Assembly: GCA_033442325.1 (NCBI GenBank)
Contig: JAWQFM010000026.1
Location: 945,526-983,576, forward strand
Reading direction: 5' to 3'
Source of the DNA: Salpingoeca rosetta
Taxonomy: Eukaryota > Protista > Choanoflagellata
DNA: 38,051 nucleotides
The position numbers and the translations under genes are program-made. Positions 16,564 through 22,500 of the stretch are shown one piece after another. The notes under the pieces were generated by a model. It was not told where the DNA came from and did no database searches. It saw only the letters and a list, made by a program, of their open reading frames with translations. The first letter of the stretch is position 1. The number at the start of each line of letters is the position of its first letter.

Positions 16564-19500
16564 TTATGCGTGTGCGCCGCCATACACATCAAAGCCGCCG
16601 GGAATCTCGGCAGTGGCGTAGTCCGACTCAGCCTCCATCGCGGCCGTCGCGCCGTTGTCGCTGTCTGCACTTGGCGAACCATACACGCCAAACAGGTCTG
16701 GCGCAGGGTTGCCACGCGGGTTCTTGCCAATGTTGATGTTGACGTTACCCTCCTCCGTGGTCGTGCCATCGTCATCGCCTGCGCTGCCGTACACTTCAAA
16801 TCCGCCAGCGGGCGTCTGTGCCGTCGCGTACACAGCATCGTCGTCATCGTCGTTGGCGGTGATGTCGTAGTTGGCCGGGTCCCACCGCTCCGTGTCTTGC
16901 GACGTATCATTGCCCACATCGTACGTGTTCTCGGGCTTGCTCGTCGACCCTGTGTGGTACAGCAGCGTTATTTCATGGCGTAGGTGTATGTGTGAGTGTG
17001 TGAATGTGTGTGTGTGTGTGTTTGCGGCTACACACGCCGATGATTATGTGCATGTGTGTGTGCGTGTGTGCGTTGTTGCTCACACGTACACACACATGCA
17101 TGTGTGCTTGTGTGAGCACCTCGTTACACATTGTAACCCAACAAACCTCCAACACCATCTCCACTCATTCTCCACACTTTCCCAACGTCGCACCTCCGTT
17201 GATGTCGTTGACATCCGAGTACGTCATTTCGCCTGGTAACTCCGCTGTAAATTGAACAGGCGTGCACACAACAATGTCGATGTGAGCAGGTGGCAACGCG
17301 CCTTGTTGAGCCACGCATGCCTGCATGCATTCAACAGGCCAACTTACTCAGTTGCGTTTCCTCCAGATCGGCGTACATGGCGTCTTGCACCGTCGCTGTC
17401 GTCGACACACACACATGTGCAAATCAAAACGCAGGAAACACGCGTGTTCGTCAGCGATCATCTGAGTGAACGTGCAACACACACCACAACGACACAAGAG
17501 TAATTACGCGCGCACACACACGGGCACAAGCGGTTCAACTCACGCTCCAAGTACACGTTGGTTTGCATCGGCTGAGATTCAGTGAAGAGCGGCCATGAGA
17601 TGCAGGCAGAGGCACGATGTGAGTGACAGCTGAAAGTGCAAACAAACAAACGCCCCCAAGACATGCGCACGTATCGTATCGTTGCACGTGTGCACATACC
17701 TGACGAAGCGTGGGCATGAAGGGCAGGTAGGCGTTGGACAGCGCCGCCTGTTGTTTCGGAAAGCAAGACGTCACGCAACAGCAATAACAATAATGGCGAT
17801 GACAACAGTGTCAGCAAAGGATCAAAATAGCGCGTGTGTATTTGTGTGTGTGTGTGTGCCTGCATGCACGGCCATGATACGAAGAACGCATGCGTGCGCG
17901 TCATTCCATTCCCGCCATGCCTGGCTCTCATCACACCTGTGGCACAGGGTTGGCGTTGCTTGCGGCCTGCTGGCACATGCGAAGAATCTCCCGCATCGAC
18001 TGGATTGAAGCAAACGTTGCGTTTGAAATTGGAGCATGAGCGATGTGCAAATGATATCGAAAGCGATGGTATCGAACACGCACACATACAAACATACATA
18101 CATGCATACATACATACATACATACATACATACAAACATACATACATACATACATACATACATACATACATACATACATACATACATACATACATACATA
18201 CATACATACATACATACATACATACATACATACATACATACATACATACATACATGCATACATGCATACATACATGCATACAAACATACACTCACACACA
18301 CACACACAAACACGAATTCAGCATTCAAGTATTACCGGGCGCGTTGCTGCTGGCACGACGCAGCAGCGCTGAACAATGTCAAACAGCTCTGATGGGATGA
18401 GTTGCAGCATGAGGGGCGGGTTGCCGCGACGAAGAGCGACCTTGAAATCCTCTACACGCGCACAGCAATGAAGCGGCGTGAGAGGTCAGTTGTGCATTTG
18501 CCATGCAATATTGCCTGCAGGCACGAGAGTCGTCGTGAGACCAATCACTGACATTGCTCGTACCGTTCATGTAGGGTGTGGCGCCAAGCGAAAAGATTTC
18601 CCAGAGCAAAATCCCAAACGACCACGCATCACACGCCGGCTGTGATGAATGTAAGAGCATATGTGTGTGTGTGTGTATGTGTGTGCGTGCGTGTGTGTGT
18701 GTGTGTGTGTGTGTGTGTGTGTGTGTGTGTGTGTGTGTGTGTGTGTGTGTGTGTGTGTTGAGGGGGAGGGCGTGGAAAGTGAGAGAGGAAAGACAACCCG
18801 CACACACACACACACACACACACACACACACACACAAGCATACACATTCGCACAAACAAGCACACGCACACACGCATGTACGCAAGCATACACGCACGCT
18901 TACAAACATATACACGCCCAACACAAGTGCACGCGCAAAGCACAATGCCCCTCACGGTGTGTTTGGCTGTGGGATCGGTGACGAGCTCCGGTGCGCACCA
19001 GCGAAGAAGGAACGCGCCGTCCGCGTGCGCGTCTGCGATTGCGGCACCATCGTGCTCCGCCAGAGACAGCTGCATGTGGGATGGAGGCATGTGAGAAGGG
19101 GCGGGGGACAATAAGCGCAATGGTGTCATCAATTTCCAGTCAACAGACGCAAGGTGACGCCGCTTGACACATCCACAAGATGTCACAAAAGCAACAACAA
19201 CAACAACAGTATCAGCAGTAACGGTATCAGCAAAAGCAGTAATGGTACATAGCAGTGTCAGCAGTGTCAGCAGCAGCAGCACACCTTCCAGTTTGGGTCG
19301 GCGCCAATCAGGTGAACGACAGCACTGTGGATTGAAAGATTGAAAGATTGAAAGCAGGAAGAAGCAACGTGCAGATGAGCAATTCACATGTTACATACAG
19401 GCAGGGCATGCTGTCCCGAAGGCAAAAAACAAGGAATGCAATGTGACACGCGGCTCAAACGTACCCTCGTGTGCACGAGTGGACAATGCCATGCTTGTGA

Positions 19501-22500
19501 AGCCATACAAGCGCCGATGCAACCTGGACGCCGATTCGTGCGCGCTCAGCCAGCGAAATGCCCTAAAGGGTGGATGGACCAACAAAGTGGGGTGGATTTT
19601 GTGTTAGCCACAAACAGAGAGTCGGCACATCGCGTCAACGCAATGCCAATGAAGAATGAATCGTCCACACACGCACAGGACACATGGTTGACATGGGTGA
19701 CGTGTGATGCACAAACACAGAAGAGGAAGAACACATCTTGTTCTCGTGTTCTCTACTCCCCCTCATACAAGCAAATCACACACTTGCACACCTCCGGGGC
19801 GGCGTTGCTCTTTGAACGGCATGCGCGCAGTCGCTCATCAAGGGCGACGGTTGGCGCCGGAACACATAACCGGTGCTGACCCAGGTCACACAGAGCAGCC
19901 CTGAACAAACGCACACAAACACACACACACATGAGCACGCACACACACACACACACACAAACACATGAGCACACACACATGAGCACACACACGCACACAT
20001 GAGCACGCACACACACACACACATGAGCACACATGCATGTGCACATGGCCACGAATATCAAGACCGTGAGGATGAGGGTGGTGTGTTACGCAAGACAGCG
20101 GTTACTCGCGACGTGCAAGCAGCAACACGCGGCCATGTACCCAATGATGGAGTCTGGTAGTGTTTGCTTTCCAAGTTGCTGGAACAGACGAATGTCCTGT
20201 TGGAAAACACAATGCAGGTTCTCATGAGCATCAGGCGAAGCTGCCGGCACACACACACATGCAAGCAAGCAAAGCACACAGGCATGCAAACAAAGCACAC
20301 ACGTGCATGCAAGAAAAGCACACAAGCATGCATGCAAGCTCAAGACATGGGCCATGAAGACAATCAATAAGCACCTTCTCGAAACAGTCACGCAGGAGTG
20401 TGGACGCGCCAGGCCTGAGCGTGTAGCACCACAGCTGACGACCCTGAGTGCGCGGGTATGAAACAGAGGAAGCAGGTGTGACATGCAGCGTGGCGAGCAG
20501 TTAAAATGATCACAGGCTGTGGAGCTGTGACACAAACGTGCACACAAACAAACAAACAAACAAACATTCACACATGTTTTAACAACACACACGCGCACCT
20601 GGTGCTGGGCGAGCTTTACGGGTCCGTAGTAGGAGGAGAAGGGCGCGTCGGTGAGATCAAGGTTGTTCATGTCAAGCTCGTCGTATTTGCCGACGGCATT
20701 GCGGCGGCGGCGGCGGCGGCGGGGGCGGATGACAAGGAAGAAAAGGAGAAGGACGATGATGATGACAGCGCCACCACCAGCAGCACCGGCGATGGGGATG
20801 ATGGAGGTTGATGTGCTTGGCGCGATGGTGACGGGCACGGAGGTGGACGTGCTCATGGTTTGCGGGATTGGCGGCTTCTTGGGCTGGGTTGTTGTCGTTG
20901 TTGATGATGCAGTTGTCGTGGTTGTGACAACGGTGGTTGTCGTTGTCGTTGTCGCAATCGTTGTGGATATGGGAGTTGTCGTTGTGGTGGTGGTTGTCGT
21001 GGTGGTGGTGAATGTTGATGGTGACCGCGTCGTGAGTTTCTCTGTACACATGTTGCCGACGTTGTCGCCAAACTTGCTGGCGTTGTGGGTGATGACAAAC
21101 GCTGAGCCAGACGTCAGGCGTAGGGACGAGCCGGGCTGCCATGTGAAGCTCCGCACCACCGTGTTCATGTCCACGCGTATGTCGTACGCCGGCCCGCCTT
21201 GTATCAGCGTGCTGCGTGCGTGCTGATCCGTGCACGGCACGCTGCTGCCCTCCCACTTGCCGTTGTCATCCCAATCGCCATTTTCCCGCCTCGTCCACAC
21301 AACTGAATGTAAAGTCAGCCAAGGAAGAGAGAGAATGTGTGTGTGTGTGTGTGTGTGTGTGTGTGTGTGTGTGTGTGTGTGTGTGTGTGTGTGTGTGTGT
21401 GTGTGTGTGTGTGTGTGTGTGTGTGTGTGTGTGTGTGTGTGTGTGTGTGTGTGTGTGGCGGGAGAGGAGGCGGTTCAGGTTGACTTGCGTGTTCGTGCGG
21501 GATGGTGCGATGTTGGCAAACAGTGCACACGCACACACGCACACACACACACACACGCACACACACACGCACATGCACATACACACATACACATACCTGG
21601 TGCTTCGCGTTGGATAACGGCTGACTTGCGAGCAACGACACGATCGGAGCCAGTGCCGCTGGCAACCTCGAGTGTGAGGCGCGTGGAGGGCGTGTTGTCC
21701 AGGGCAACATCGCCAATCCACTCCGTGCCGGTGACATTGATGCTGTGCGCGCCATCGTTGACCTGCAGAATGCCCTCACTGCTGGGCGACCACACGGCCT
21801 GGAACGACGTGGCAGTGAGATCCGTGGCGAGAAAGGTGTCAATCACGGGGCAGGGCTCTGCCCGCGGCACACGAGAGAGCACCAGGCGCCCGCCCTGGTT
21901 GAGGCGAAGCGGCGTGTCTGGCGAAAGCGTCAGCTGGGTCATGCGCGCCTGAGGGAAGGTGTGATGTGAGGGGGGGGGTTGATGCATATGAGGCGTTGCG
22001 TGTTGGACTCAAGACAAACACGTGGGCAAGTGTGGTCATGGTTGAGCGTGAGCTGACACCAGCGCAGAGAAAAGCCGGGGAGAGCGTGCCAACGACAGGG
22101 TGAGTTGCACAGTGGAAACGGTGAGCGCACAACGCAACATTCTTGTACCTCGACAGATTCTTGGATGGTGGTGGCGTGGGAGACGATGGCTGCTTCGCAC
22201 GTGCACGGGGCGCGACCGACACTCCACGCGTCCGTGGAGTTCCACACCAACGCCGCGCCTCCAGGCGAGGCTGTCGTCACGACTGTACGCGTGTGTGCAA
22301 CACAGCAAAGCAACAGAACAGGACACATGAACAGTAAGCATCAGCCATGTGTGTGTGTGTGTGTGCTGCGTGAGGTGCAGGCAGCCAACAAACAGACAGG
22401 TAGACTGTCCTCCCACATACATGAACAAAGAAGGACAGTGCATTCATTCGCTTCAGCGAGTATAGGAGTATGTCCACTGTTGTGCACACAGCGGGAGAGA

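Follow-up and report, generated by a model that had tools for sequence, protein, structure and literature searches.

A probable receptor pseudokinase family conserved among choanoflagellate genera

RYK, PTK7/CCK4, ROR1/2 and HER3 are single-pass receptors with a tyrosine kinase (TK) fold that have lost catalytic residues and signal through partners. RYK, PTK7, ROR and HER3 each retain several of the six residues required for catalytic competence, namely the glycine loop, the beta3 lysine, the alphaC glutamate, the HRD aspartate, the catalytic asparagine and the DFG aspartate. A gene of similar design lies on the minus strand of a 38,051-nt stretch of DNA (contig JAWQFM010000026.1, positions 945,526 to 983,576; this whole stretch is called the window, and positions are given in its numbering). 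The window gene differs from these receptors in that all six catalytic positions are changed, a far more complete degeneration. It probably encodes a type I receptor with a dead, TK-derived domain of kinase fold that serves as a scaffold, and it belongs to a discrete family that appears to have been kept dead across several craspedid choanoflagellate genera.

Receptor pseudokinases have been predicted in choanoflagellates before, so the general picture is unchanged (PMC3584944). In M. brevicollis, 3/9 RTKB kinases are without catalytic residues and were proposed to be pseudokinases or scaffolds (PMC3584944). The window gene resembles the RTKB proteins as a choanoflagellate receptor with a TK-like domain that lacks catalytic residues and may act as a scaffold. 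It differs from them, to judge by their description, in that RTKB proteins have Cys-rich, hyalin, SCR or EGF ectodomains and RM2 tail domains of 80 residues, neither of which was found in the window gene (PMC3584944). New here are a defined family, a dead state that is conserved across genera, constraint on the dead domain, and corrected gene structures.

Gene structure and catalytic residues

No entry for the window protein was found in the protein collections searched. The protein was studied through its exons and with scripts, and orthologues stood in for it in Pfam comparison, fold prediction and large-scale searching. Two of these are used throughout, P0002 from Microstomoeca roanoka (805 amino acids, complete and transcript-derived) and P0003 from Salpingoeca rosetta (995 amino acids, a complete second copy). 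The original prediction, made from the window sequence alone, was a spliced receptor pseudokinase domain at positions 17937 to 20640 in a gene of 18 exons. Exon-by-exon reading bears this out. Six-frame reading with inspection of every junction gave 18 exons and one frame of 887 codons, which runs from an ATG at 22665 to its single stop, at the end, at 16564. The introns are GT..AG throughout and measure 103–336 nt, and the reading frame is kept across all junctions. The predicted interval corresponds to the end of exon 4 together with exons 5–13.

The encoded protein begins with a hydrophobic N-terminus, followed by an ectodomain of about 265 residues, a Thr-rich stalk of 77 residues and a membrane span of 25 residues (IIPIAG...FFLVI) that leads directly into RPRRRRRRR. 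The kinase-like domain of 268 residues (20640 to 17937) comes next, and then a tail of 192 residues. This order, read directly from the sequence, is that of a type I membrane protein. The hydrophobic run ILLAVFLLLTVV in exon 1 is signal-peptide-like, as read by eye, and the window exons gave a weak Pfam match to EphA2_TM. The features of the gene are as follows.

16564..22665, minus strand: entire coding sequence in 18 exons, with 887 codons before the stop; collinear with P0002 and P0003
22512..22665, minus strand: exon 1; start codon and signal-peptide-like hydrophobic N-terminus
22149..22282, minus strand: exon 2; first Cys-containing ectodomain motif, W..W..GR.PC; aligned with all orthologues
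21597..21948, minus strand: exon 3; central FN3-like beta-sandwich of the ectodomain, from an orthologue model and alignment
20599..21302, minus strand: exon 4; second motif (W..NW..PC..QHAR), Thr-rich stalk, membrane span, Arg-rich juxtamembrane stretch and degenerate Gly loop
about 20728-20802, minus strand: membrane span, within exon 4
20617-20640, minus strand: FSSYYGPV Gly loop, within exon 4
20375..20443, minus strand: exon 5; beta3 strand, with Tyr (20423-20425) at the position of the ATP-binding Lys; Phe or Tyr in every orthologue
20141..20196, minus strand: exon 6; alphaC helix, with Asp (20194-20196) for the conserved Glu; Asp or Asn in orthologues
19792..19900, minus strand: exon 7; beta4-beta5, hinge and alphaD, with the family-conserved block PAPTVALDERLRACR
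19465..19562, minus strand: exon 8; alphaE and former catalytic loop, HSC (19473-19481) for HRD; weak PK_Tyr_Ser-Thr match at the expected profile positions
19285..19324, minus strand: exon 9; remainder of the former catalytic loop (Val for the catalytic Asn) and family motif GADPNWK
18956..19069, minus strand: exon 10; LAE (19055-19063) for DFG, conserved activation segment without Tyr, LLRWCAPE (APE at 18986-18994)
18564..18639, minus strand: exon 11; alphaF with TK signature; by itself matches PK_Tyr_Ser-Thr at E = 7.4e-8; 88% identity with M. roanoka
18336..18451, minus strand: exon 12; alphaG-alphaH, ending in CC....RP
17937..17999, minus strand: exon 13; alphaI and end of the kinase-like domain; collinear with orthologues; reading through the preceding donor leads to a stop
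16564..17747, minus strand: exons 14–18 (17700-17747, 17544-17571, 17348-17395, 17176-17244 and 16564-16949); acidic tail with 11 Tyr

Canonical kinase positions were set by aligning the spliced window domain with six relatives and 43 other kinase domains. The peptide strings on which the original prediction relied are all present. FSSYYGPVKLA lies in exon 4, from 20640 downwards, and LWCYTLRPGAS in exon 5; FEKDIRLF spans the exon 5/6 junction as FEK/DIRLF, the string in which HRD has become HSC (...VWLHKHGIVHSCTRG) is in exon 8, and WKLSLAEH is read across the exon 9/10 junction as NWK/LSLAEH. In the alignment FSSYYG occupies the GxGxFG position, with loss of the first two glycines, and LWCY occupies the VAxK position, with tyrosine in place of lysine. 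FEKD stands for FxxE (Glu to Asp), HSCTRGAV for HRDLAARN (Asp to Cys and Asn to Val), and LAE for DFG (Asp to Leu). Thus every residue of catalytic competence is replaced in the window protein, and the earlier claim that all canonical catalytic motifs are lost holds in this alignment. The domain is predicted to be incapable of productive ATP binding or phosphate transfer.

The C-lobe has kept its TK character, as also claimed. Alignment to the consensus of the 43 domains identified LRWCAPE in the P+1 loop, the alphaF signature in exon 11, and CCVVPAATRP in subdomain XI, the last matching CC....RP. The original prediction had proposed comparison with the PK_Tyr_Ser-Thr hidden Markov model (PF07714), and this comparison agrees. 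Exon 11 by itself scored 32.4 bits, and the orthologues scored 54–79 bits (cutoff 23.1) with E values of 1e-14 to 1e-22. Scores of the orthologues against Pkinase were lower (32–40 bits).

Because the exons of the domain are short (40–116 nt) and their junctions were set by hand from the DNA alone, one could suppose that the splicing is wrong and that the true mRNA restores Lys, HRD and DFG. Splicing of this kind, which the original prediction named as a result that would refute it, was sought in the scanned minus-strand frames, and no such motif was present. HRD-like, DFG, VAVK-like, GxGxxG and AARN strings are missing from every minus-strand frame of 17900-19918 and 20040-20760, so there is no alternative exon able to restore activity. 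Furthermore, transcriptome-derived orthologues align without gaps over every junction, and in P0003 the HSC...NWK stretch lies within a single exon. Erroneous splicing is extremely improbable.

A family in several choanoflagellate genera

To place the window protein, relatives were collected and compared. A word search that took the large exon 4 as its query found S. rosetta PTSG_13080 (P0001). The window exons are 36–70% identical to their S. rosetta counterparts, which marks the window as DNA of a different choanoflagellate. The P0001 model ends in the N-lobe because of a run of N in the assembly (about 13450-14180 of locus L001, GL832992.1). Beyond this gap the kinase domain ends and the tail follows, in what the annotation treats as another gene. 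PTSG_13080 has 564 amino acids, and the next annotated gene, of 844 amino acids from L001:14368, begins inside the last kinase exon and has a Tyr-rich tail. These two models represent a single gene split by the assembly gap. P0003 was considered as a match to PTSG_00705 in a kinome mapping by locus tag and coding sequence length; the two are equal in length but are different proteins, and the assignment was rejected.

Hartaetosiga balthica has a divergent member, P0015 (811 amino acids). Environmental relatives form two groups, one of P0004/5 and one, the P0007 cluster, that includes P0160 and whose population variants are 1–7 residues apart. P0160 comes from a 1727-nt Logan contig (L003) of run ERR1719235 and holds the membrane span and the entire kinase-like domain in one uninterrupted frame. 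This run is presumably an ocean metatranscriptome; if so, the dead receptor would be expressed in nature by a marine choanoflagellate.

Architecture and dead motifs are shared by all family members, which come from at least four genera. Two relatives that carry these motifs come from transcriptome assemblies of two other genera. The family forms of the catalytic motifs are given below.

Gly loop: FSS[YF][YF]GP
beta3: [LS]W[CR][YF]
alphaC: Asp or Asn
HRD position: HS[CS]; FCN in H. balthica
DFG position: [LCF][AV][EG]

This distribution suggests that the receptor would already have been catalytically dead in the common ancestor of at least four genera. The boundary of the family was examined with a family profile. 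Members scored 160–566 bits per domain, the window domain 439 bits, and the best outsider, an amoebozoan domain, 84 bits. Since members score at least 160 bits and outsiders at most 84, the family is discrete. Some of the best outside domains are ordinary kinase domains, and others are degenerate in their turn. Among 1.84 billion representatives searched with the family profile there was no animal member.

The family motifs bear on whether the domain could be an atypical active kinase in which catalytic residues have been relocated, as in WNK, which uses a lysine of the glycine loop. Most members do have a lysine after the glycine loop (GPVKLA), and nothing is lost from APE or the substrate-binding P+1 loop. 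However, this lysine is missing in H. balthica (GPIVAV). Moreover, at the positions of the catalytic Asp, the catalytic Asn and the metal-binding Asp all members have other, non-acidic residues, so that neither a base nor metal ligands are left. Activity by such a route is very unlikely.

Conservation was examined along the length of the protein. Between the window protein and both P0002 and P0003 the kinase-like domain aligned over 268/268 residues with zero gaps, and such an alignment with proteins of two other genera excludes chance. This domain is the best conserved region of the protein, with 53–58% identity to P0002 and P0003, as opposed to 36–43% for the ectodomain and 27–37% for the tail. 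The ratio of nonsynonymous to synonymous substitution rates (dN/dS) was calculated by NG86; with dS at about 1 or higher, the values are approximate. For the S. rosetta paralogues it was 0.16 in the juxtamembrane region and N-lobe, 0.24 in the ectodomain, 0.28 at the end of the C-lobe and 0.22 in the tail. A comparison with orthologues, one of the checks proposed with the original prediction, gave 0.24 for the kinase-like domain of the window protein and P0003. These ratios all point to purifying selection in every region compared, and the dead domain appears to be the part under the strongest constraint. Within it, the former active-site region is strongly conserved across the family (GADPNWKL, the activation segment and PAPTV.LDERLRA.R). 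This result suggests that the former active-site surface has taken on a new binding or allosteric role.

A decaying pseudogene, or a locus that is untranscribed and evolving neutrally, would account for the loss of all catalytic motifs. The original prediction took the open frame as an argument against a pseudogene. That argument is strengthened by the conservation of the domain and by dN/dS values of 0.16–0.28, well below 1. In addition, no stop interrupts the 887-codon frame across its 18 exons, whose splice sites are all intact, and the architecture and dead motifs recur in four or more genera, of which two are represented by transcriptome assemblies. Taken together, the introns shared with P0003, the selection, the gap-free alignment and the transcript-derived orthologues exclude both decay and an artefact of splicing; on sequence grounds the gene is neither, and the chance of a pseudogene is negligible.

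P0003 has nine introns, of which 8/9 are at positions common with the window gene. A further nine introns are found in the window gene, a difference that reflects either gain in its lineage or loss in S. rosetta. Among the strongest whole-protein matches to the family profile were P0006 and P0008-P0013, long proteins in which 3–10 kinase-like stretches stand in tandem, many of them degenerate, for example with ILRNLSAAN or VHRALMASN for HRDLAARN.

Fold and relation to animal receptors

Structure prediction had also been proposed with the original prediction. The sequence modelled was that of the M. roanoka orthologue, as a stand-in for the window protein. AlphaFold2, given an alignment of 50 rows, returned a bilobal tyrosine kinase fold for the M. 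roanoka domain with a predicted local distance difference test score (pLDDT) of 91.3 and a predicted template modelling score of 0.90. The activation segment is ordered in this model and has short helices. When the model was compared with the PDB by Foldseek, the top 50 matches were all tyrosine kinases, with template modelling scores of about 0.7 and 17–22% identity. These neighbours include BTK, FGFR1-4, ROR2, ROS1, FAK, ABL and KIT.

We asked which animal receptor is closest. A search of solved structures with the family profile placed RYK (6tua, 80 bits) and PTK7 (6vg3, 70 bits) above FGFR4 and FAK, and RYK was the only match that also covered the N-lobe. Single sequences gave other results. 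With P0003, RYK (59.4 bits) tied with EphA3 (59.3 bits). With P0015, HCK, MET and FGFR4 were on top, and RYK was absent among the 60 matches listed. Nor was RYK among the top 50 structural matches from Foldseek. Orthology with RYK is unsupported in view of the tie with Eph, the result with P0015 and the structural ranking, and the leaning towards PTK7 was no more consistent. The family is provisionally classified as a member of the tyrosine kinase group without a demonstrable animal counterpart.

An origin independent of PTK7, ROR and HER3 is plausible, since the family has no animal member and the top rank of RYK was reproduced neither by single sequences nor by structure.

Ectodomain, tail and possible mode of signalling

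The ectodomain was compared with those of the animal receptors. Pfam scans of window exons 3, 4 and 18 and of the orthologues detected no WIF (RYK), Ig (PTK7), Ig, Fz or kringle (ROR), or L-domain or furin (ErbB) modules, in agreement with the earlier claim that the ectodomain is unlike those of PTK7, ROR and HER3. A model of an orthologue ectodomain had an overall pLDDT of 57.5. Its central part reached 70–89, and residues 88–168 matched FN3 domains with Z of 8–9. The membrane-proximal W..NW..PC..QHAR module of P0002 and P0003 matched the first 77 positions of the Amnionless profile (PF14828) with E values of 1.6e-5 and 3e-4. These matches score 24 and 20 bits, short of the curated cutoff (30.4), and pLDDT is below 50 in this part of the model. 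The Amnionless profile had no match in the window's own exon or in the P0015 or P0001 ectodomain. Amnionless is, like the window receptor, a type I membrane protein, and the likeness consists otherwise of these weak, sub-cutoff matches in two orthologues only.

One could propose that receptor pseudokinases predate animals and that the family is the choanoflagellate sister of RYK/PTK7-type receptors, with Amnionless-like modules that bind a cubilin-like or matrix partner. This proposal is quite unlikely. If it were true, signalling by a dead receptor together with a Src-type kinase would date back to the common ancestor of choanoflagellates and animals and would not have been invented several times.

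The tail has 11 tyrosines and is acidic, with 18% acidic and 3% basic residues. Directly after the kinase-like domain is a motif conserved between genera, Y[LMF]P[FY].PS.RQ. Further inter-genus motifs are N.[VF]Y[LVT][ED], Y[AS].[LV][EQD]ET and repeated W..(D)...YD[VI] units. The tail motifs are common to the window gene (17700-17747 and 16564-17244), P0002, P0003, P0007 and P0015. They resemble fixed docking sites and go beyond mere richness in tyrosine. In M. brevicollis, the tail domains of RTKB2 are bound by the SH2 domain of MbSrc1 once MbSrc1 has phosphorylated them (PMC3584944).

We infer that the receptor has a co-receptor or scaffold role. The ectodomain, with its two Cys-containing W..NW..PC modules around an FN3-like sandwich and its mucin-like stalk, would bind a ligand or partner. 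The rigid pseudokinase domain could then provide a docking or allosteric platform. Because the receptor would be unable to phosphorylate itself, a partner receptor tyrosine kinase (RTK) or a Src-type kinase would have to phosphorylate the 11 tail tyrosines in trans. The phosphorylated tail may then recruit SH2 or PTB proteins.

The main rival to this passive scaffold is that the pseudokinase domain is chiefly an allosteric activator of an active partner RTK, as HER3 is for HER2 and EGFR. In its favour, the kinase-like domain is better conserved than the tail and ectodomain. There are family-specific conserved blocks in the hinge/alphaD region and the activation segment, and choanoflagellates have many active RTKs (PMC3584944). 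Conversely, no neighbouring RTK gene was seen next to the locus within the portions of the window examined, and the conservation of tail motifs between genera fits docking. The activator is unlikely, and a scaffold in a family kept dead remains the probable reading.

Some points weigh against the proposed receptor. The HRD/DFG region of S. rosetta PTSG_13080 falls in the assembly gap, and the ectodomain model is poor, with the overall pLDDT given above. The only hint that the locus is expressed is the share of words sampled from the stretch that occur in contig sets. Eight presumed RNA contig sets, of RNA or unclear kind, contained 0.28–0.40 of the sampled words, in line with the exon share of the stretch, 0.39; DNA-like sets contained 0.67–0.96. 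The kind of the eight sets was guessed; their sources are two named studies plus one sample that has no study attached.

The family may be a good entry point to the function of non-catalytic receptor signalling in a unicellular relative of animals because it spans at least four genera, was apparently dead in their common ancestor and shows its strongest constraint on the dead domain. Genome editing is in use in S. rosetta (PMC11984502), which has two copies of the receptor and would thus be open to genetic work on it.

Two observations concern the surroundings of the exons. Many introns of the window gene are filled with microsatellites, including long perfect ones: (ACAT)30 in intron 12 (18136-18255), (GT)n in intron 10 (18691-18758) and (CA)n in intron 3 (21336-21457). 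The upstream neighbour, at 23068-23900 on the minus strand, resembles the C-terminal part of an elongation factor G gene.

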